Shown: piece by piece, positions 7,528-57,219 of the stretch
Layout: each line of letters opens with the position of its first letter
How positions within the stretch are numbered: the stretch's first letter is position 1
Assembly: GCA_004431415.1 (NCBI GenBank)
Contig: QPMI01000005.1
Location: 682,001 to 746,000 of the forward strand
DNA length: 64,000 bases
Reading direction: 5' to 3'
Source of the DNA: Cyanophora paradoxa CCMP329
Taxonomy: Eukaryota > Plantae > Glaucophyta
Made by a program: the position numbers and the translations under genes
The notes under the pieces: generated by a model
Databases searched by the model: none
Seen by the model: only the letters and a program-made list of their open reading frames with translations
Told to the model about the DNA's origin: nothing

Positions 7528-10500
7528 ATGAGGGGGCCCTGGGGACTTCTCGTCGCCTTCCTGGCTGCAAGCGCGTTTGCGCTATGCCTCGCTGGTAAGC
7601 CATATACATATTTGTGCATGCCTTGATGCTCGCGCTGTACATCAATATCTGCATATGCATAATGCATGTTGATGGATGCATATGTACTGCGGCGCCGCGT
7701 ATGCATATGATTCTGATATCGATCATGAGACGCTTGACCTCCCGACCGATGCAGATCTTCAGATAGTTGTTCCGACCAGCCCCGTGTGCATCACCGGGTC
7801 CACTGCAGACGGCTCCGCGGCCACGAGCAAATGCAGCATCTCCTGGACCTTGCAATTGTGGGGGGGCGGCACCCCCGCCCAAGTCCGCATCTACGTCTGT
7901 CCCGCAGCCGGCGCGCGGGCAGCCTCGAGCATGGATCGCGTCGCGGAGTGCGCGCAGGTGAGCGCGGGCCGGGCGCGCTGGCGCGCGCGCACGCGTCGGT
8001 TTCTCTGTTGTCAAGCTGCTAATTGCAATTGCGACCATCGAACATTGACGTCGACGATCATGCGTATGCCAGGTGGGGGAGACGGCCTCCCAGGCGGACG
8101 GGTCTGCGAGCTTCCTGCGGGTCGCACTCTCCGAGGCCGCGCTCCTCGTGGCCTGCGGAGGCTCCGGCACTCCCCCATTAGAGAACAGCGGCGGGTGCGC
8201 GCGCATCGCTTTAATTCTTCGCTACATGTGCAGGCTTGCTAGCTCTAGGCTAAGCCCATAAACCCTGTCCATGGCCAGGCAATATATAGCCCCAGCACTG
8301 TGGCAAGGCCCTATATAGCTAGCTATAGGCCATTAAGGGCGGCGCCCATTAAACTGCTTTCATTGCGTTTGCAGTGGCTGCGTCGCGGAGTGGTTGGCGG
8401 TCGCGTTTGTCGACCCGAGCCCCGCGGCCGTCTACAATGCTACCCGCCCCCTCGCGCTCGTTCCTGCGTCAGGTCTGTCGGCGCAAAACGAGTCACTGTG
8501 CTCGCACGTAGTCTGAGATTGAGCGCGCGAGCACACGCGCAGGTCTTGGAGCCAGCGGAGCTTTGAACGTGACGGCGAGCAGCTCGGATGTCTGCTTGGT
8601 GGGCGGAGGGCCCTGCCAGGTTCAGTTCACCTACTGGGTCGCGGCGGACTGGGTCCTCGTCTACCTCTGCAGGGGCGACCCCTCTTCGGCCGCGATCGCG
8701 AGCGTCGACGCCTTCAACAACGACGGTTGCCTTCACGTGCGCCTGCGATATCGATCTCGATCGCCTTGAGCTCCAGTTGCGATCGCGAGTTCCACGTTTA
8801 ACTGCCGGCGCCGCGCAGATCGCGACCGTCGACAACACATACGCCCATGCCCCGATGTCCGCGAACGCGTACCTCTCCTCCGCGCAGTACGAAACCCTCT
8901 GCGGCGCTGCGAGCTCCTGCCCGGCTCGCTGGGTAGTCTCCTCGGGGAGCGTCCCTGCGATCGTTGGCACGAGGAGCGTTCAACTCTACTCGCGCACGAG
9001 TGAGTCCGGCCCGGCCCCCGCGATCATGATACCGGTATCATGACGGCGGCCCTCAGCGCTGCTTCTGACGTCGCGGACGGCGGCCTCGTGCACTGCTATG
9101 CCCGCGTCGGGCGACTGGACGGCGACAGAGTCGTGCCCCGTGGCGTGGATAGCCTCACAGTACTACCACTGGAGCGCATACATCTGCGTCTACGTTTGTC
9201 CTCCGACGGTCTCTACATCGGTGAATCAAACGAGCAATGATACTGTGACGATACAGACAGCTGTCTACTCCGGCACCTGCGTCATGGTTCGCTTCAGACC
9301 TTGAAATGAGCTCAGGCAATGCACGGTTATGCACCGAGCTCGAGTAGGCTATGGCTAGATCTAGATCATCTGCATATGCTTTTTTGACGCGGACCCATCG
9401 GCCGCGGGGCGCTCCGTCCAGGTCGGGTGTGTATATCACTATGGTCCGGGAGACTACATGACGGACTTCCGGCCGCCGGCGTCGTCGTACTCGGCCATTT
9501 GTGGCTCGAGCGCGAGGTGCACCTCCATTATATTCCGAAGTTCGGGGGCCAGGATCCTTAACTTTCCTTACTAAAGATCTAGATACCACATTATATGCAT
9601 ATATATATAAAACTATGATATTCTTGCCTCCGGCGGTCGGCATCCTTGCGCTCGTTCTCTACAATGACGCCGCGATAAGCAGCGGCTGCGACGCTCAGTG
9701 GGTCGCGATGAACCAATGGTACACGATTGAATATGATACCCGGCCTTTCCGCTTCCTGCCGCCGCCCCCGGAGCGGCCCATGGCATTCACCCCATGGACG
9801 GCTGCCAACTGCTCAGCTGGCGGCGAGCCCTGCAACGTTGGCTGGACAGGCTACGGGGCGGGCTTTTGCTGCAGCGCAGTGCAGCTCTTCATCTGCCCTG
9901 CCGACGTCGATGCCCTCGCGTCCGGCTCGGCCAGCCCGAATGCGACGGAATCTTGCGTATGGGTGCGTGGCGCGTGCGCCCGCGTGCGGATGCATTTCGG
10001 TAGGCTTATTATCACTGCAATCGGCTCGCAGGTGGCAAGCGGAGGGTACGGATCCTTCTCAGCAGTGCCCACTCTTGCCTCGTACCAGCGGATCTGCGGG
10101 ATGGCGCCCAGGTCCGTCCAGGCATATTGAGAAATCTATGGCTGTTCACTGACGCCGTGGTGCACACGCGCAGCGGCTGCCCCGCGGTCTGGCGCATTGT
10201 CTCCACCACAGATTCCACGAATTTCGCCTCCCAGAACATGACGCTGCTGCCACCACCGCCCATCGCCATCGCCGACTCGAGCACGGCCAACTGCTCGGCG
10301 GGCAGCTACTGCTACTTGTACTGGACGGGGTACGGCGTCAGCCGCGGTAGCGTGGCGGTGTACGTGTGCAGCGCGGCGGTGACGCAGGCGTCCGACGCGG
10401 CGGGGTCTCCCTCGTGCTTCCACGTGCGGGCCTTCGAATTCTAGATCTTTGCAGTCCTCGTTGCAATTGCAGGCGCTCCGCTCTTTTCCTCGGGTCTGAT

Positions 10501-24299: not shown

Positions 24300-27200
24300 T
24301 CAGTGGACGCTCTCCACGTCGGATGCGTCGGCCTCCTCCTCCTCCTCATCCTCCAACTCCGACTCCGACTCCGACGCCGGCGCCGCGGCGTCGGCGTCGG
24401 CGTCGCAATCGCTCTCCTCCGACTCCTCGTCTCCGCCTTCGCCATCGGAATCGGAGTCGCCCTCGAGCTCGTTAACGTTCCCCCAGCCCACGCCGCCCTC
24501 CCCCTCGAACACGCGCCGGACCGCCTCGTCCGCCCGCGTCGCCTCGTCCGCCTGCGGCGAAGAAGTGCGTAAGATTAAAGTCAATATCTAGACTATCGGA
24601 GCAAGTTCTAGTCAAGACGTCGGGCTGCGTACGACAGCCTCCTCTAGGTCGAGGAACACGGTCCGGCCGAGTCGCCGGAGACAGTGCGAACCGGCGCCGG
24701 AGTCCTGCACGTGATCGCAAGTGAGCCTAATTATATATTATAAGGCGCCATCGAACTCGCGTTCGCTCATTTATGTGCCCGCGTAAGCAATCAAACAGCT
24801 GCACCTGCAGCAGTTTTTCCTCCACCACGTCCCAGAGGCGGACGGTCTCATCCCAGCTGCCCGACGCCAGCGTTTTGCCGTCCTGCATTCCCCGTGAGAC
24901 TCTTGAAAGCGCTCTAGCGCACACCAAACTCGACGCACAGAGGAGAACGCGAGCGACACGACCGAGTTCGTGTGCCCTTTGAGGGCAGAGAGCAGCGTGC
25001 CATCGACAACGCTCCACACAAGCACGTCATCGCCCTCGCTGTTGCCGGCGCCCGACGCCAGGACCTTGCCGCTCTGCATAAAGCGTCAATAAATACACAA
25101 GCGCGAGGAAATCCGGAATCCAACGGCGGCACCGGCGAGAACGCCACTGAAGCCGCAGAGGCGCTCTCCCCTTCGAAGACGCGGAGGAGGGCCCCGTCCG
25201 CGGCGCTCCACAGCCGAACGGCGCCGCTGCTGGTCGAAGCCAGCGTCGCGCCGTCCTGAATTTGGTTTTAATTTCCGCCGTTAGCATTCAGGTTCCAGCT
25301 TTTGAATTTAGAGATTATAATTAGAAACAAGGCATCGCGAGCAACGTTAACTCACCGGAGCGAATGCCACGCATTCTACTTCCCCAGGCTCGAGCTCGAG
25401 AACACGGAGCAGAGCACCGGTGTGCGCGTTCCACAGGCGCACAGTCTTGTCGTCACTTCCAGACGCCAGAGTCTCGCCGTCCTGCACGCCCCACGAATGT
25501 GAGCTCTCATATCCAATTTAAGACGTCGACCTGACTACTTGTTACTTTTACTTTTTTAAGTTTTACCTTCATTTCTAGGTACAGAGATGTAGATCTGATA
25601 CAATAATAAAACTGCAGGCTCACCGGCGAGAACGCCACTGACGTCACGGAGCCCGCGTGCCCCTCGAGCGCCAGGGTGCCGAGAAGCGCCGCGCGGCCGC
25701 CCCCCGCGTCCTCCACGCGCCACAGCCGCACGGTCTTGTCGGCGCTGCCCGACGCCAGCGTCCTTCCGTCCTGCGTTCCCAAGGTTTAACGAGCTTCGAA
25801 ACTCACTCGTTCTCCCCTTCTAGATCTGATGCGAGAACGGAGGCACCTGCGAGAATGCAAGCGACGTAACTTCACCACTATGCTCCTTGAGGGCGCAGAG
25901 AGCGACCCCTTCCGCCACGCTCCAGAGCCGTACGACCTTGTCCTCGCCACCCGACGCCAGGACCCCGCCGCGCTGCGCGTCCTTCGAGCATCAGCTTATC
26001 GCTAACGCAGCTTATGGCAGCTCATACGGCGCACCGGCGAGAATGCCACTGATTTCACATGCGCATCCTTTGTGCTCGCTCTGAGTACTCGGAGCAGCGT
26101 CCCATCTTCTGTGCTCCAAAGCCGCACTGTTTCATCGATGCCACCCGAAGCTAGCATCTTGCCATCCTGCGCAAAAGCTTCCGTCAAAACAGAGCACGAC
26201 TTCCCAATGAATGACCGTTTGCACCGGTGATAGTGCCACCGAGTCCACACTCCATATGTGCCCGTCACAGGCACGGTGGGCCACTCCTTGCGTCATGCTG
26301 AACAGTTGCACAGTTTTGTTCTCACCGCCAATGGCAAGCACGCATCCATCCTGTCGGCCAAGCGAGCATGAGCTCGCAGTCGGGAAGAGAACAGACCCTA
26401 GGCGCTTCGTGCTCGTACCCGCGAGAGCGCCACCGACTTGACGCCCGCTGTCGGTCTCCCAACGACCCGGAGCAGCACCCCCTCCTCCACGCCCCACAGC
26501 CGAACGCCCCCGTCTCCACTCCCCGACACCAGCGTCTTGCTGTCCTGCGTGGTCCACGAGCGTGAGCTGCAGCGTCATTGAATAAAGCTCCCTTTCCCGC
26601 CCTTCTGCCATCCTCTAGCTATTTGATTCAGCCGACCTATAGCTAGCTATAGCTCGCAGACATAAATAAAATAGAGCGGACCCACGTGAACGCCACCGAG
26701 TAGATGTCGTTGATTGAATAGTACGGCTGATCGAGTTTTCGAAGCGCAGCGCCGTCCGTCGGGCTCCACAGCCGTATTGAATGGTCCTCACTGCCCGACG
26801 CCAGAGTCCTGCCATCCTGCACGACCCGCATGGGATGATTGAGCAGTGAGCACACCGCCCAAACTCTAGATCTTGTAGTCCTTCAAACGCAAGCGGCGGC
26901 GCGCACCGGCGAGAACGCCACCGAGCGGACGGCACTTGAGTGCCCCTCGAGGGAGAGAAGCAGAGTCCCTTCCGCCACGCTCCAAAGCCGCACGGTCGTG
27001 TCGGCGCTGCCTGAAGCCAATGTCTCGCCGTTCTGCGCGCCCCGCCAACATGATTGTTCTGTCTTGCAAATTAAAAAAGCCGGAAGGTAAAGCGCACCGG
27101 CGAGAATGCGACTGAACGAATTTTGGCATTATGACTTTCCGTCGAGAACGCGATTCGATTTCCTTTCGAATCTAGACCTGCCACTGTTCTCGAAAGCACG

Positions 27201-30200
27201 CGGATCAGTTTCCCGTCTGCTACTCTCCACAGCTTCAAGGTCTTGTCTTTGCCGCCAGATGCGATCTTTCCATCCTGCTCAGGGATTTTCGAAAGTGATG
27301 TGAGCGTCATTTCAGAGTCGTGATCAGACAGCCAAGCAAGTTCTATATCTAGGCCCGTAACCCAAACAAATTCTCTTAGCTCAAAAATCAACAAGTCGAG
27401 CAACGTATCTCGAATTTCAGCACATGCCACAGTTAAACCAAAGCTCCCGTGCCCCACGTATATGCAATACAAATCCGTCCCAAGCGTTGCGACGCGCAGC
27501 GCACCGGCGAGAAAGCCACCGCGAGAACACCGCCCGCGTGCCCCTCGAAGCTTTGGATCGCTTCCCCGTCTGGAAAGCGCCACAGCTTCACGGCGGCATC
27601 CTTGCCACCCGATACCAGCGTCTTTCCGTCCTGCGCACACGTATAACGTGAAAACATAGGTAGGTAAAAAGAGCAGCGAGAGGACGTAAGACCGCACTGG
27701 AGACACAGAAATGGAGTGCACGGGTCCCTTGTGCGCCCTGAAGCGCTTAACCTCGCGGTGGGTTGTGGCATCGATAATGCATATTTTCCCGTCTTTGCAT
27801 CCAGAAGCGACCAGGCGACCGTTCTGCATGCAAAGATCATAAAGGACGATGAAGCTCATCAAGCTGATGTGCGCACCTGATCATGAGCCGGCGCGAACGC
27901 AAGACAAAGCACTTCCGATTCAAGATCGTATGCAGATAACAGGCCCAGGCTGCAGCCGGTGAGGTCGGCGCCCCGCAGGTCGGCCCCCGCGAGGTTAGCC
28001 TCGTCCAGCAGCGCTCCGCTGAGGTCCGCCCCGCGCAGGTCCGCCCCCGCGGCCTCGAGCCGGAACAGGCGTGCTCCGGGCACACGCACGCCTCGAAGCG
28101 ACTTCCCGGCAAACGAGACGCCAGCTGCCAAACGTCAGCGGAAAAGTAAAGGGCACCCCTCTTTTTATTTTGCAGAGCTGTGGTATTTGAGAAGGATGAA
28201 CGACGGACCGAGGTTCAAGATGGTCATAGCATTGGCAGATGCAACGGGGGAGCCGCCGCGCGCCGACTCGCGCAGGCATTGCCAGAGTGCCTAACGCGCA
28301 ATTTGTTAGAGGTTTAAACAAGCTTAAGCGCCCGTGAAAATGAATGTCGGCGAACCTCTGCAAAAGGCGGCTCGGAGCGGGCGCGATCCGCGAGGAGCTC
28401 AACGACGGCCCAGTCATCCACCAGCAGTTTGCTGCTCATCCTGCCCAGATCTAGAGATTGTACTACTTTCGCAAGCTCTTGCGGTTCCATGGGGACCGAA
28501 GCGTCCAGATTGGGGAGGATGCTGTCGGCGAGAAAGTACTCTTTCAGCGAAGCGTGCACGAAGCTGTATGAGACCTTGACGTCGCCCTCTCTCGACCGCG
28601 TGAGCGGGGCCGCTTCCAGAAATGCGCCATTGGCCTCGGCAGTCAGGAACGCAGTCGCTTCTGCAGTTGCGTCGCGATCACAATTGTCGTCGACGGCGGA
28701 ATCGCTGTCGACGTCCACCCGCACAGAGAAGACCGTCGTATTCTGTCGTCATCGCGATCGTATATATGCACACGCAATTGTGATGAGCCCGCGATCGCGA
28801 GCACAAACGAGAAAAGCCATTCAATTAATGTCCGACAGCAGACCTTCCTGTCCATCATGACGGCGAGCTTCCGGCAGAAGTTGCGGCACTTGGCGGCGAA
28901 GTCGACGAAGCGCCCCTGTCCCTCGCGTTTTCGCTCTTCCCGCTCGAGCAACTCCGTCACATACGCTTTATACACGTCTCGCATCAGCACACGTGCAACG
29001 CCCATCTTCCCCTTCGCTAGCGCTCTCCTGCAACCGCCAAGCCTGAGATAAGCAAAAAATAACAGATTCAGAAGCCGTGCACATTTTCTCGATGATCAAC
29101 GGGAGGGCTCTGCAGGTAATGAAGAGGACGAAAGGCGTGCGGATGATGTTGAATAGGCCGAGGATCGTGTTGATCTGCTCCTTGTACCACTCGCAATTGT
29201 GCTCTGAGTCTGACTGTAACTTAAGCCATTGCTCAATGTACGCCCCAATTTGGTCCTGTTCGAAGGGGCATGTCCACGCCTCGCATAATTGTTTCTGATC
29301 GCGATCGACTTCTGCATCCAGCTCCGATATCGCTGCAGGTTCTAGCAAGAAGAACTTCTGCCGACAGAAAAGGCAGATGTAAGATAACTGAAACGACGAG
29401 TAGTCGGACAATCATGATCACAATGATACCTTCGATTTCGAATCACCCCCCAAATTCAACAAATACTGGGCGCGGCAGGTGACAACGACACGGGCAGCCC
29501 ACGACTTGAGATCTGGGTACAAGATGTGAAGACCGTTTCTTAAACGGGCCTGAAGGCCTGCCTTTGTGAGAAGCTCCTCGACGAGGTCCCGGTTCGCGAC
29601 GGATACGTTGGGCAGGGAAACGAGAATGGGAAAAGGGGAGCCAGAGCCCGGCTGCCACTGCTCGAGCAGGCGCCTGTGCAGCCGCCGCAGGCTCGTCGTC
29701 TTGCTGCAGCCGGAGTCGCCTGTAGGGTCGGGATTTTAACTTGAAAGAACGGTGTATTTTCTGTTAACGACAGCAAGACGACTGCATGATGTCTCACCGG
29801 TGAGAAGGAGCACGCGGTGGCCGGCTGTGCCCCTGCCAGGCGCGGCGCCGGAGACCGCAAAGGCGTCAAGGGCGGCGTCGAGGTCGAACCGGCGCGTGCC
29901 GTCCGCCGCGAGGCACCCCTCGCGGTCCGCAGCAGCCCGCACAGGCATGTACACCTCCTTCTCCATCTCTTTCTCGTATCGCTTGAGCTTCGTTTCTCGC
30001 ACCTGGCACGCTATCAGCTAAAGGCAAATTAAAGAGCTGTGCTGCACAAAGGTAGGATGCACCCCGTTTAACGCGTCGTAAAGCTGAAGCGTGGGATTTC
30101 TCTCCGCCTCGGCCTTGAGGGCTTCCATGACGAGCGCACTCCACTCTGTACACGCATATGGTACTGGTCGAAGGCGTGTCCCAGATCTGGCGCCGGACTC

Positions 30201-50500: not shown

Positions 50501-53438
50501 CGTGCCCCGCCCTCGTCCCCGCCCCCGATATCTTTCTTCGATCCCGAACTTTCCGTCGATCCCGAACGTTTCTTCGATCCCGAACTCGGCGCGCGCAGGT
50601 GCGCGCCCTCAACGACTCGGCCCAGGCCCTCTCCTTCACCTTCACGGTCCGCCCGCCCCCGATATCTTTCTTCGATCCCGAACTTTTGGTCGATCCCGAA
50701 CTATCTCTCTTCGATCCCGAGCCCGGGCCCGCCCGGTTCTAGAGGGGCCTGGCCCGCCCGCCCGCCCGGGCTTACATCTATGAGGAGCGCTGTCTGTCTG
50801 TCTCGGCCCCGCACAGGGGCTTACATCTATGAGGAGCGCTGTCTGTCTGTCTGAGGAGGGCTAGCGCTTCTTCTTCACACTGCACCCTCCTTTGAAGCGT
50901 GCCGTCGGTCTAATCGCCGTCTTGGTCCTATCTGGCACGGGTCTAGAAGGGGCTTGGGCGGGCCTCTCTTTGATCCCTTCTAATCGATCTGACGTCGGAA
51001 ATCCCCGTCCCCAGCTCACGTTCCTGCGGGGCGGCCCCCCCTCCAACGTCAAGGTCGAGGTCCGCGTACCCCCCTCTCTCCCATCCCCCGCCCCGCACTC
51101 GATCCCAGCGGGGGCGGGGGCGGCAGGTGACGTCGACGGGGGCCCTCACGGAGGAGATGCGCCGCTCCCTCCTCTCCGGTCCGCGTACCCCCCCCTCCCC
51201 CTCCCCCCCCCCCCCCCCACACACACACCTCCCTTTGTTCTGAAAATCACCTCTCACATCCCCCGCCCTCAGACGTCCCTGGGACGGCGCTGCCGCCGCT
51301 GGTACCCCGGTTCCTTCGGCTCCAGGGGCAGGGCCAGCCCCAGGACCTCGACCCCCAGGTACCCCCCTCCTACCCCCCCCCCCCCCCCCCCCCCCCCACA
51401 CACACACATTCGTTCCCTCGCTAGCTCTAGCGCTAGCTCTATATATTTCTGCGCGGCGCCGGCGCGCGAGGCCGGCACGAGCTTTCCCTTCCTCCCTTAG
51501 TCCGTAGACTGACAAAGACCGACTGACCGGACCGCGCCGGCGTGCGATGCCGGCCTGAGCGTTCCCTTCCCCCCTTGGTCCGAAGAGTGGCATGGACCGA
51601 CTGACCGGACCTGCCCCGGCGTGCGAGGCCGGCGGGGAACTTCCGCTTCAGCGAACTTTTAGTCGATCCCGAACTTTTAGTCGATCCCGAACTTTTAGTC
51701 GATCCCGAACTTGTAGTCGATCCCGAACTTTTAGTCGATCCCGAACTTTTAGTCGATCCCGAACTTTTAGTCGATCCCGAACTTTTGGTCGATCCCGAAC
51801 TTTTAGTCGATCCCGAACTTTTGGTCGATCCCGAACTTTTAGTCGATCCCGAACTTTTGGTCGATCCCGAACTTTTGGTCGATCCCGAACTTTTGGTCGA
51901 TCCCGACTGACCGGCCGCGGCAGGCGCGGCTGGCGGGGGCGCTCCGCTTCAGCGCGGCCTCGCTGAGGGGCCCCGACGCCGGCCCGCCCTTCTGGTCCCT
52001 CACCGCGCCCCCGGACTCCAAGGGCGGCCCCGAGGTGCGTTCTTTCGAGCGTTCCCGGCGAGCCGCCCGCCAGAGCGAGTAAGAAAGTAAGAAAACAGGA
52101 CAAAGAAGCCCAAGGATTATGTATCGCGCCTCGGCGCCCCTAAGCCGCCCCGCAGCCGCAAGCGCAGCTCCAGCAACTCTAGCAGCCGCAAGCGCGCCCC
52201 TAAGCCGCCCCGCCCCCGTTTCGACACGCCCCGCGCGCGCAGGTGGTGGCGGTGTCGGACCCGATCCCGACGGGGGTCATCGGGGAGACCCTCGCCTCCA
52301 TCGGCCTCTCCGGCCTCTGTGCGCCCCCCCCCCCCCCCCCTTGCCCTGTCCCGTCCCGTCGCACACGAAAGCAAGTGTCTTAGATCGAACATGGAAGAAC
52401 GTCTATAGCGTCGTAGATCGAACATAGAAGAACGCAGGAGACCGTTCTTCTGCCCGTCCCCCTCCCCCTCTGCCGCCCGTCTGACTGGGCCGCCGCTCTC
52501 GCGCCGCCTCCTCCTCGCAGATGTGACGGTGCCGCACCCTCCCCGTCGAGCTGGAGCTCGCGTCTAATTGTGTAACTTGAACAACCGACCCGCCGGCGCC
52601 GCGCAGTTTGTGCTCGGTGTCTCCCGCTTCCTCCGCCTCTTCCTCTCCCAGCTCCAGGCCCGCCCCCGCCCCCGACCCCGGCCCCCTCCCCTTAGAAGCT
52701 GCAGCGACGCCATAGAAGCGACGAGGAAGCTGACTTTCTCGCCCCGCCCCCGCCCCCGGCAGACGCGGATCATGTACGAGGACATCCCGGAGCCGGCGGA
52801 CGTCTGGCAGCTCTGCCTCGACATCTACGCCGCCCGCCAGGCCCGCCCCGGCCCCGCCCCTGCGCATTCCACGGCCCCCGCCCCCGCCCTGCGCCCGCCC
52901 TGGCACGTTGCCATAGGCCCTTCCATGAAACATTAGCTCCCCATAGCATCGGCCAGCTGGAGACGCGAGCTTCCATTAGCTGCCCATAGCATCGGTTCTC
53001 ACTGACCGACTGCGCGCCGCGTCGCCACAATAATTATAATAATAATAATAATTATAATAATAATAATAATAACAACAACAACAGGACGGGGACCACGTGC
53101 TCGAGGAGAAGCTCTACAAGGAGCTCATCGAGCTCCACAGGCGAGCTTTCTTATAATTGCATCCCATTGTTTTCTTAAGAGCCTTAAGTCTTCTTGTTTT
53201 CCTACGTACTGGAGACTAAGAGGCCTCCTAGGCCCGGCCTATGCCCGCCCCCTCCTTCGATTTCCTGCCTGGCGCGTTCGTTTGCCGCGTCCCAGTCTGA
53301 GCGGGCGGGGCGGGGCGGGCGCGCAGGAGCCCCGAGGCGCTCATCGCGATCACGGCGCCGCGGCACGCGGAGGGGGGCGGGGCCCCGCACCCGACCTCGC
53401 CCCCGCACCCGCACCCGCCCCGGCCGGCCCAGCCCTAG
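35508..53438 (+). CDS. PIEZO: Piezo-type mechanosensitive ion channel, full length, many dozens of short introns
   Basis: N-terminus LLLAGALRQNIISLVYLILF followed by many TM exons. The C-terminal pore module reads AYMSIPFLYEVRTLLDWTFTDTALKFYSWLKLEDIFGNLF, KISVGCAMFCVVLLIIWGPLLIFSTGNP, GLSGLYVTFVLGVSRFLR, RIMYEDIP..LCLDIYAARQDGDHVLEEKLYKELIELHRSPEALI. Stop TAG at 53436-53438. Confidence 0.96.
51652..51903 (+). repeat. Intronic 18-bp minisatellite, 14 copies (CGAACTTTTRGTCGATCC)
   Basis: Direct tandem array inside a Piezo intron. Related TCGATCCCGAACT units occur at ~50535-50590 and ~50670-50720. Confidence 0.95.
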
Positions 53439-54614
53439 GCAGCGTAGGCGCACAAGTTACAGCTAGTTTTCCTGAATTGCAGTCGGGTCGATCGCGAGCC
53501 CTAGGCGTCAGGCAAGTGAGCTTCCTTTATCACTGCAATTGCAAACATATCAGGCTCAGCTAGAGCCTTTGGAAAGAATAAATGAGATAACTGATCGCCG
53601 GCCGCGGCCAGGGCATGGTCGTGATATCGATGGAGAACCTCTTTTTCTATGGGGGATATCGATGTTTAGCTAGAAAAATTCCTTCTTTTAATGTGTAGTC
53701 AAGTTGCACTCGTAGAAGGATAAAGAAGCAGCAGGGGGGCAAGAGCCCCCCCCCCCCCCCAATTAAATGATGACATGACGAAAGAAATTTACATGCAGAA
53801 ATGAAGTTTTATTACGCGATCTAGAATTCGAATTGGAACGTGCATGCCATGATGCGCAGCCCTGGCAGCTAGGGGTGAGCAGAATAGCGCGCTAGCGTCG
53901 ACGTCGGAGCCGGGCCGCGGGTGCGCGGCCCGGCTCCGCGATCGCGAGCTCGAGCCTCGAGTTCACGTCTGTCGACGTCAGTACTAGTAGCGATAGTCTG
54001 TCACATGATCCGATGATCATGGACTGTGATGATGTACCGGTACAGACCGTAACATGCAGTGTGGACTCGCCGTGGAGACGGTGGCGCCATGGACTCTGGC
54101 ATGGAGTGGCATATGCATGGACTCGTGGAGGAGTTTTTCATGGATATGACTCGATTCAGTGCAGCGAGATCGTGAAACCCTTGAAGGAAGTTGGAGGAAC
54201 TTGAAAAACAGTTGGAGCGAGTTCGAATTCTTTTTTTCGTTTTTCATTCGCTAGCCTCTTAGGACCGCGCCCGTTTTTGCAGGGAATGGATCGTTGCTCT
54301 CGAGCTTGCGAGGTCTCGAGGTTCACCGAGTACGTCCTGGTGGCAAAAAAGAAGAGGGGTAGCCTGCGGCGGCTTGCACATGCGCGAAGCGCTCAGGTCC
54401 TCGGAATAAAGGCTCGGATACATCAGCAGCAGCGGCGCGGCGCTCGCATCAGCAGCCTGGAAGTACCGCCCGACCAGCAAAGCTCAAAGCTTAAGCCGCT
54501 GCGCAGCACGAGTTCTAGCGAATTTATATAGCAGCCGCCGGAGCAGCAGTTCGCCGCGGCGCGTCTGCCCGGCCTTCACCGCGTACGCCGCAGTTCGCCT
54601 CGAGAAACACGACC

Positions 54615-56866
54615 ATGTCCGCCGTGATCGACGACAGGGTGCGCGCAAGAGGTCTTAAGAATCTGCGCACAAATCTTAAGAGCCGCGGGCGCTTCTAGGC
54701 CTAGGCCTATAGCTAGGCCAGCAGTCGCCGCCGGGCCGTGCCGCCCGGCCGCGGCCGCGGCCGCGGGTCGCCGCCCGCGGCGCCAGGCGCGCGCGGGGCG
54801 CGGCCTGTATACGTATCGCCTCTAAGCGCGGCGCGGCCTGAAACGCCCCGGCCTGCAGCTGGCCCTCCACAGCGCTAGCGCGGGCCGGGGCGTGCAGGAA
54901 CTCACGACGCCGAGTCGCGCGCGCAGCTGCTGGCGATGAACAACGACCACGAGGGAGAGGACGAGGTGAGAGCCTGTCCGATTCGATTTCGGTTTATACA
55001 AATTTGCGCGGCTGAGCGGCTGCCGGCCAGAACCAGGAGGACGTGACAATCGAGGAGGCGGTAACGGCGTCCAACGACCACGAGGGCGAGGACGAGGTGA
55101 GAGGCTGCTCGATTCATTTCCGGTCTATTTAGAGTCGCCAGCCTAAGCCGCCGTCGGTCAGAATCAGGAGGACGTGACCCTCGAGGAGGCGGTGACGGCG
55201 TCGAACGACCACGAGGGCGAGGACGAGGTGAGAGTCTGTTCGGTTCGATTTCGGACTATATATTTAGAATCGCGCGGCTGAGGCGGCTGCCGGCCAGAAC
55301 CAGGAGGACGTGACCTTCGAGGAGGCGGTGACGGCGTCGAACGACCACGAGGGCGAGGACGAGGTGAGAGCCTGTTCGGTTCGATTTCGGACTATATATT
55401 TAGAATCGCGCGGCTGAGGCGACTGCCGGCCAGAACCAGGAGGACGTGACCCTCGAGGAGGCGGTGGCGGCGTCGAACGACCACGAGGGCGAGGACGAGG
55501 TGAGAGCCCGTTCGATTCGATTTCGGTTCATTCATATTTGCTCGGCTGAGCGGCTCGCGGCCAGAACCAGGAGGACGTGACCCTCGAGGAGGCGGTGGCG
55601 GCGTCGAACGACCACGAGGGCGAGGACGAGGTGAGAGCCTGTTCGATTCGATTTCGGTTTATTCACATTTGCTCGGCTGAGCGGCTCCCGGCCAGAATCA
55701 GGAGGACGTGACCCTCGAGGAGGCGGTGACGGCGTCCAACGACCACGAGGGCGAGGACGAGGTGAGAGCCCGTTCGATTCGATTTCGGAATATTCATATT
55801 TGCACGGCTGAGCGGCTCCCGGCCAGAACCAGGAGGACGTGACCCTCGAGGAGGCGGTGGCGGCGTCGAACGACCACGAGGGCGAGGACGAGGTGAGAGC
55901 CCGTTCGGTTCGATTTCGGTTCATTTAGAATCGCCCGCTGAGGCGACGGCCGGCCAGAACCAGGAGGATGTGACCCTCGAGGAGGCGGTGACGGCGTCGA
56001 ACGACCACGAGGGCGAGGACGAGGTGAGGGCCCGTTCGGTTCGATTTCGGAATATTCATATTTGCACGGCTGAGCGGCTCCCGGCCAGAACCAGGAAGAC
56101 GTGACCCTCGAGGAGGCGGTGACGGCGTCGAACGACCACGAGGGCGAGGACGAGGTGAGGGCCCGTTCGATCCGATTTCGGTTCATTCATATTTGCACGG
56201 CTGAGCGGCTCCCGGCCAGAACCAGGAGGATGTGACCCTCGAGGAGGCGGTGACGGCGTCGAACGACCACGAGGGCGAGGACGAGGTAGGGAGCTAGATT
56301 CATCAGATTCCGGTTTACGTCGAGTCGCCCAGCTGAGTCGACGTCGACGGGCGCGGGCAGAACCAGGAGGACATCGAGTCGTACATCGCCATGCAGCTGG
56401 ACCAGGACGCGCAGCTGCTCGAGCAGCTCGCGCTGGGCAGGTCCGCGTCTGCTCTGCGCGCGCCGGCTAGAGGGGACGGGAAGACGGGACGGCTAGAAGG
56501 GACACCGCCCGCCCGCCGGGCCGCTCCCGACACCGCTGCGTGGATAGCGCTCCCCACTGCCTTTCTCGCCTCTGATCTCGTTCCGGCCGCCCGCCGGGCC
56601 GCCTAGCTCCAACGACGCTGCGCGGCTAGCGCTCCCCACTGCATCTCTCTCCTCTCTGCCACTGCCGAATCCACTGCCTTTTAGAATCTCGCAGCCGTCA
56701 CTTAATCTGGCGCTTTTTCAATGCCTTTTGCCTTTTCTAACTAAATCTCTCGCCGGGCAGCCTGCACTTCGAGCTCGAGCTCGAGGACGGCGGCGACGCC
56801 TTCGCGAACGACGACCACGAGGGCGAGGACGAGAACCAGGACGACATCGCCTTCGACCTCTTCTAA
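54615..56866 (+). CDS. Acidic tandem-repeat protein encoded by repeated exon-intron units (UIM-like repeats)
   Basis: TATA-like TTTATATA at 54523 and ATG at 54615 (the first splice junction is uncertain). Ten 66-nt phase-0 exons (CAG|..|GT) each encode NQEDVT[L/I/F]EEAV[T/A]ASNDHEGEDE. Exons 56361-56440 and 56761-56866 follow, ending ..DHEGEDENQDDIAFDLF*. Confidence 0.8.
54940..56285 (+). repeat. Tandem array of 131-136 bp units (66-nt exon + 65-70 nt intron)
   Basis: Exon starts at 55031, 55162, 55298, 55434, 55565, 55696, 55827, 55958, 56089 and 56220. Indels and most substitutions fall in the intron half of each unit. Confidence 0.95.

Positions 56867-57179: not shown

Positions 57180-57219
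<40 letters not shown>

Follow-up and report, generated by a model that had tools for sequence, protein, structure and literature searches.

The locus described here is a genuine protein-coding gene of 14 exons, with its coding sequence on the + strand at positions 54615-56866 of the window (i.e., the entire 64,000-nt stretch of DNA under analysis). In its architecture, it is a tandem exon-duplication repeat gene, a known kind of gene that is present here in an unusually compact form. The two limits given in the initial annotation of this DNA coincide exactly with the start (ATG) and stop (TAA) codons of our RNA-supported model (Table 1).

Anatomy, transcription, and splicing of the gene

Tandem Repeats Finder (TRF) revealed an array with a period of 131, 10.2 copies, and 90% matches. 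Unit extraction resolved this apparent 131-bp satellite, as the initial annotation had claimed, into ten 66-nt exons of phase 0, every one of which has CAG upstream and GT downstream. The repeat-exon product is a 22-residue unit, NQEDVT[L/I/F]EEAV[T/A]ASNDHEGEDE, which is read in a single frame throughout all ten exons and varies at just two positions (L/I/F and T/A). In the register chosen by TRF, the unit opens with the final 24 nt of one exon, passes through the intron, and takes in the initial 42 nt of the exon that follows. A 24-nt exon segment is present 12 times in the window and was found 0 times in 100 shuffles. Mismatches among the central units number 4-9 per 131 nt, and divergence is highest in the units at the edges. 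The rest of the window holds no further copy of the repeat unit, exon 13, or exon 14.

The array introns are 65 or 70 nt long, and that following repeat exon 10 measures 75 nt. They are of the GT..AG type, begin with GTGAG or GTAGG, and finish with CAG. A branch-like CTGA or CTAA motif had been noted in nearly all of the copies, and we found one in every array intron, 19-28 nt upstream of the acceptor. Similarly, a comparison of the array units bore out the observation that indels lie only within introns, given that all length differences are confined to them. The gene was also said to be hidden from the ORF track, and indeed no + strand ORF of at least 120 aa was found across the array. The only ORFs over it are two antisense ones of 130 aa each (at 55532-55924 and 55794-56186), which are due to the 393-nt (3 x 131) periodicity of the sequence.

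Reads were mapped from four runs of one organism, three of which (X1, X2, and X13) are considered RNA by the guess of the tool only. The fourth, run X3, displayed an even depth of ~32 over the locus and its flanks, and it therefore behaves as genomic DNA. The spliced contigs obtained from X1, X2, and X13 are short, have a depth of 2-5, and each cover part of the array. In the X1 contig, 54445-54637/8 is joined to 54926/7-54965, followed by 17 letters that match the start of a repeat exon. The X2 contig (96 nt) contains the end of a repeat exon running straight into the start of another. The X13 contig comprises the end of a repeat exon and then 56359-56434/40, from which it jumps to 56755/61-56845. 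Collectively, the introns between exons 1, 2, and a repeat exon, between one repeat exon and another, and between repeat exon 10, exon 13, and exon 14 are skipped exactly at GT..AG. The mRNA is thus spliced at each junction tested, and the contigs of the three putative RNA runs skip introns as the initial annotation had predicted for a transcribed and spliced array. Since all repeat exons are 66 nt long and of phase 0, skipping any of them would, by arithmetic, leave the frame intact.

Within the transcript, no ATG precedes that at 54615, and from this codon the + frame is open across the 14 exons to the stop codon. The 5' untranslated region is free of ATG codons, and its frame is shut by an in-frame stop just before 54519. 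At the other end of the gene, exon 14 contains a copy of the unit junction that lacks an intron (NDDHEGEDE-NQDDI), and its product ends in DDIAFDLF. The last intron holds an 82-bp repeat (1.9 copies, at 56505-56655).

Table 1. Features of the gene and its tandem array, in window coordinates.
Feature	Position	Strand	Basis
5' untranslated region	54438..54614	+	RNA-type contigs begin at 54438 and 54445 (two runs)
Exon 1, coding part, 8 codons (MSAVIDDR), donor GTGCGC	54615..54638	+	Contigs and frame check
Intron 1, 288 nt, GT..AG, very GC-rich	54639..54926	+	Skipped by run X1 contig
Exon 2, 39 nt, phase 0, ends NDHEGEDE; left partial copy of array unit	54927..54965	+	
131-bp tandem array, 10.2 copies	54942..56287	+	Tandem Repeats Finder
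Repeat exon 1, Ile variant; left edge, most diverged unit	55031..55096	+	Unit extraction
Repeat exon 2	55162..55227	+	Unit extraction
Repeat exon 3, Phe variant	55298..55363	+	Unit extraction
Repeat exon 4, Ala variant	55434..55499	+	Unit extraction
Repeat exon 5, Ala variant	55565..55630	+	Unit extraction
Repeat exon 6	55696..55761	+	Unit extraction
Repeat exon 7, Ala variant	55827..55892	+	Unit extraction
Repeat exon 8	55958..56023	+	Unit extraction
Repeat exon 9	56089..56154	+	Unit extraction
Repeat exon 10, weaker donor GTAGGG	56220..56285	+	Run X2 repeat-to-repeat contig placed here
Diverged 75-nt intron, homologous to array introns	56286..56360	+	
Exon 13, 80 nt, NQEDI start as in repeats, then unique amphipathic segment	56361..56440	+	
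Last intron, 320 nt, GT..AG	56441..56760	+	Skipped by run X13 contig
Exon 14, coding part, stop TAA at 56864-56866	56761..56866	+	

Constraint on the repeat peptide and origin of the array

Pairwise difference between the copies amounts to 3.8% in exons and 17.7% in introns. Eight exon columns are variable, including six synonymous third positions and two conservative first positions (those of the L/I/F and T/A changes). By Nei-Gojobori counting, the 13.3 synonymous sites hold 6 of the variable columns and the 52.7 nonsynonymous sites the other 2 (Fisher p = 4e-4), i.e., the variability is 12-fold lower at nonsynonymous than at synonymous sites, as measured among the copies of a single array that are themselves undergoing concerted evolution. 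Variability at synonymous sites equals that of the introns (31/70; p = 1), and GC at third codon positions (GC3) reaches 97% (293/301) versus an intron GC of 63%. The repeat peptide is clearly under purifying selection, which is the same conclusion that the initial annotation had drawn from exon changes described as mostly synonymous or conservative.

The array shows equal-length exons of symmetric phase, alignable introns, and spliced contigs, as expected of tandem exon duplication. The exon/intron anatomy and the splicing also agree with the earlier proposal that the gene was built by tandem amplification of an exon plus intron unit. We postulate a tandem amplification of a 131-bp segment that reached from the end of one exon, over a 65-nt intron, into the beginning of the following one. 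The duplication would have had both of its ends inside exons, and therefore each new 66-nt exon would be the start of one exon fused to the end of another. At the flanks of the array, exon 2 retains the right-hand motif of the unit and exon 13 its left-hand NQED start. Since the last exon has the unit junction without an intron, an intron was either gained before the amplification or lost there. The diverged edges and alike center of the array are what is expected of an array homogenized by unequal exchange.

The acidic product and its candidate functions

The predicted product has 302 aa and, when residues are summed per exon, it contains 117 Asp and Glu (39%), 13 His, 1 Arg, and no Lys, with a net charge of approximately -116. 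The 13 His are evenly spaced, each embedded in DHEGEDE. No signal peptide was found at the N-terminus, where MSAVIDDR is followed by LLAMNNDHEGEDE without a hydrophobic core. The C-terminal 60 residues are unique and more hydrophobic, with DDIAFDLF at their end. To gain insight into the unit, a 30-residue piece (one exon plus five and three intron-encoded flanking residues) was folded by AlphaFold2 as a single sequence, without an alignment. In this model, the only helix lies at LEEAVTAS (8 residues), with coil on both sides, the pLDDT being ~78 for the helix block and 70.6 on average for the piece.

Relatives of the protein were sought in several ways. Exons were scanned one at a time with hmmscan against Pfam-A at E<=10 (four variants of the repeat exon, plus exons 13 and 14), and no family was returned, although the HMMER filters discard matches above an E of ~0.1-0.3. 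The exons without a Pfam family thus include exon 13, which the initial annotation had loosely likened to an inverted (MIU-type) motif. Neither one repeat unit nor the last exon gave a phmmer match at E<=10 among all solved chains, and the 30-residue piece (i.e., one exon with 8 intron-encoded residues) had none at E<=0.001 among 1.84 billion representatives. A word search with the last exon, which covers proteins of 23-72 aa only, yielded no candidates, and look-alikes in the ESM Atlas for the repeat unit and the last exon included no usable match. In metagenome contigs, a degenerate DNA pattern for ASNDHEGEDE had 0 matches. That for QEDVTLEEAV had a single match, on contig L001, which we treated as chance because it falls in an ordinary, non-repetitive ORF resembling a bacterial CinA-type gene. 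Collectively, the product is an orphan, Lys-free polyanion without detectable relatives in the databases searched. These blanks are weak, both because the single-exon queries are short and acidic and because the proteins of this organism are poorly represented, given that the relatives found for a neighboring WD40 exon are all at <=41% identity. The high GC of the sequence fits a GC-rich, probably photosynthetic eukaryote, presumably an alga; among algae, the share of GC-AG introns is 56% in Emiliania huxleyi (PMC4028052) and 14-17% in Aureococcus (bioRxiv 10.1101/2024.10.30.620910).

We favor, with moderate confidence, the possibility that the protein is a multivalent acidic adaptor consisting of ten short helices on acidic spacers, for which ubiquitin is one candidate partner. 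Such a protein would be cytosolic or nuclear and, for the most part, a disordered polyanion. In this scheme, which we base on composition and periodicity, each unit would contribute one sticker for binding, the amphipathic LEEAVTAS helix, and one flexible spacer, the acidic stretch that contains His. Avidity arising from the ten stickers of a chain would permit binding to a partner that is repeated, oligomeric, or basic, and the hydrophobic C-terminal 60 residues may anchor or dimerize the protein.

The main rival to the adaptor is a buffer of cations, i.e., a polyanion that binds metal ions or polyamines (Ca2+, Mg2+, Zn2+, or polyamines) with high capacity and low affinity, and we consider it unlikely. 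Here, the carboxylates and the single His per unit would act, and the hydrophobic core would only set solubility or local structure. The content of Asp and Glu, the net charge, and the even spacing of the 13 His in DHEGEDE all suit such a role. In addition, DHEGEDE is better conserved than any other part when the 12 copies, the old ones among them, are compared, and the longer acidic segment NDHEGEDE-NQ(E/D)D(I/V) is likewise retained in each of them. However, non-acidic residues are also under selection (L/I/F and T/A being the only changes), which would be needless for a pure charge role. The lack of a signal peptide places the protein outside a calcium store or mineralizing compartment. Moreover, an EF-hand was rejected on inspection, as the spacing around Gly is unlike that of EF-hands, and the Pfam scan gave no match.

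Several other candidates were dismissed. The repetitive peptide precursor offered as an alternative in the initial annotation, which would be secreted, fails because the product has no signal peptide, no Lys, and a single Arg. SUMO-interaction, LIR, FFAT, clathrin-box, and dileucine motifs were rejected by inspection. A resemblance of the acidic-hydrophobic C-terminal tail to that of the ribosomal P-stalk proteins P0/P1/P2 was not borne out, since a phmmer search with the last exon found no match at E<=10 in the full set of solved chains, P proteins included.

We also regard as rather improbable that the protein is a reader of polyubiquitin with ten motifs akin to the ubiquitin-interacting motif (UIM), in which Ala and Ser would contact the Ile44 patch, avidity would confer binding to chains, and the reader, having no Lys, would be shielded from its own ubiquitylation. 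Ankrd13A carries four UIMs (PMC3315809), and no protein is known to exceed about this number, against the ten that would be required here. UIMs are helices of ~20 residues with the consensus AcAcAc-x-hydrophobic-x-x-Ala-hydrophobic-x-x-Ser-x-x-Ac (PMC5361193). The earlier claim that the repeat fits this pattern stood for the core, as Leu7, Ala10, Val11, and Ser14 of the unit occupy the hydrophobic-x-x-Ala-hydrophobic-x-x-Ser positions. It did not stand at the level of the profile, since PF02809 gave no match with any singly scanned exon at E<=10. Glu-Asp occupy two of the leading three acidic positions and Val the third, but Val-Thr, which is not acidic, directly precedes Leu, and the closing acidic position (Ser+3) is a His, albeit flanked by Asp and Glu. 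The core occurs by chance at 3.5e-4 per residue (54,345 residues of background ORFs in the window), which amounts to ~0.8% for a 22-residue unit, and shuffling of the unit produced it in 0.2% of cases; the ten units share one ancestor, and therefore this rare match counts as a single event, found post hoc among many short motifs.

The modeled helix covers exactly the UIM core, yet its 8 residues fall short of the ~20 described for UIMs (PMC5361193). The absence of Lys agrees with a report (PMC10169902) that lysine-free disordered regions are enriched among components of the ubiquitin-proteasome system. In contrast, no exon yielded a Pfam family and no solved chain matched at E<=10, and in exons 13 and 14, whose copies of the unit are older and diverged, the Ala/Ser pair is lost and the acidic segment kept. 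Furthermore, the choice of linkage by RAP80 is set by a rigid ruler between its UIMs (PMC2735176), whereas the spacer here is a predicted Gly-containing coil. When one unit was co-folded with a ubiquitin from a giant-virus contig (L005:9467-9694), the score was 0.02, which is no evidence for or against binding. It is quite improbable that the product is the reader in its full form, i.e., lysine-free, devoid of other domains, ten-valent, with a valency adjustable through unequal crossover or in-frame skipping, and with more motifs than any known receptor.

Another reading, which we find quite improbable, is that the array is a young, lineage-specific expansion without a specific function, its uniformity resulting mainly from recent amplification and gene conversion. 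The gene would then be transcribed, spliced, and perhaps translated, and would be under weak selection. The lack of relatives in every search run, the low depth of the RNA-type contigs, and the closeness of the central units are all consistent with this scenario. Nevertheless, the introns are 17.7% diverged and synonymous sites equally so, and therefore the copies are not very young; despite this divergence, the nonsynonymous sites are 12-fold less variable. The GC3 of 97% indicates long-standing codon adaptation, and the missing relatives may reflect the poor representation evident from the WD40 exon. Finally, that the locus specifies a spliced non-coding RNA or an opposite-strand gene is scarcely credible, because, although the long ORFs across the array are exclusively antisense, these are explained by the 393-nt periodicity, the GT..AG splice joints lie on the + strand, six of the eight variable columns are third positions of the + frame with no change of residue class at any, and that frame is open from the first ATG to the stop over 14 exons.

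Broader significance and relation to known systems

The locus is an example of a protein gene that is hidden from ORF scans, which see antisense ORFs only, and that repeat maskers would label as a 131-bp satellite. Its product, with no Lys and one Arg, would yield no useful tryptic peptides, and therefore standard proteomics would miss it as well. The array also records the birth of new exons by a duplication with both ends inside exons, and the intron-free copy of the junction in the last exon is relevant to how introns were gained or lost in this genome. Should the protein prove to read ubiquitin, or a different ligand that is repeated, in a multivalent manner, it would provide a simple natural scaffold for studies of avidity; if not, it would represent one more lineage-specific acidic repeat protein.

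The tandem-UIM receptors RAP80, USP25, ataxin-3, and Ankrd13 (PMC2735176, PMC5361193, PMC2951365, and PMC3315809) share with the predicted product short acidic motifs with the hydrophobic-x-x-Ala-hydrophobic-x-x-Ser core, several per chain, which in the product are predicted to be helical and to lie in disordered regions. In these receptors, two to four UIMs recognized by Pfam are joined to other domains, whereas the protein described here has ten near-identical units, no other domain, and no single-exon profile match. Its residues directly before Leu are non-acidic, and a flexible Gly-containing spacer is predicted in place of a helical ruler.

Prothymosin alpha and calsequestrin-type proteins are hyper-acidic polyanions. 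They have in common with the product a very high content of Asp and Glu, predicted disorder, a very low pI, and the potential to bind basic proteins or cations. The product differs from them in its periodic units, its conserved hydrophobic core, and its lack of Lys and of a targeting signal, and no sequence similarity to them was detected.

In terms of gene architecture, the closest parallels are the exon arrays of collagen, titin PEVK, and the apolipoprotein(a) kringles, which are of symmetric phase and arose by tandem exon duplication. As in those arrays, there is one repeat per exon, the phase is symmetric (0-0), the introns are homologous, the edge units are more diverged, and the frame survives the gain, loss, or skipping of units. 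In contrast to them, the unit here is tiny (131 bp), its exon and intron are about equally short, and its regularity is satellite-like; the duplicated segment appears to be bounded inside exons, so that the exons would be fusions, and the last exon bears the same junction without an intron.

Unit junctions and introns of the gene

In the last exon of the acidic repeat-protein gene, NDDHEGEDE is followed directly by NQDDI (56810-56848), forming a junction between repeat units within uninterrupted coding sequence, whereas in the array copies a 65-nt intron splits the NDHEGEDE end of one unit from the NQED start of the next. This difference implies that an intron was gained prior to amplification or lost in the last exon.

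Intron 1 is extremely GC rich at 54700-54850, with palindromic GGCC/GCGGCC runs. Several DNA contigs from run X3, which behaves as genomic DNA, break or diverge in this intron, with loose ends at 54717-54805, suggesting an element that is repeated or hard to assemble.

Surrounding features and antisense ORFs

Two overlapping antisense ORFs, and no other long ones, run across the array; they arise from its 393-nt (3 x 131) periodicity, and a gene caller that relies on ORFs would be misled by them.

Features in and around the gene and elsewhere in the window
Feature	Position	Strand	Details
WD40-repeat open stretch	27074-27862	minus	263 aa; Pfam E 6.6e-13
(AAT) microsatellite	53029-53072		14.7 copies; upstream of gene; surroundings otherwise GC-rich
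Antisense ORF	55532-55924	minus	130 aa; overlaps next
Antisense ORF	55794-56186	minus	130 aa
82-bp tandem repeat	56505-56655		1.9 copies; 82% matches; within the gene's 320-nt last intron
39-C run	57180-57218		~310 nt downstream of stop codon

Database relatives

An ORF in metagenome contig L001 encodes, at 9511-9539, the identical ten residues QEDVTLEEAV; the match is single and non-repeated, and was treated as chance. We take this ORF to resemble a bacterial CinA-type protein.

The best database relatives of the WD40 stretch are just 27-43% identical, over short parts, which shows that protein collections represent the organism poorly.
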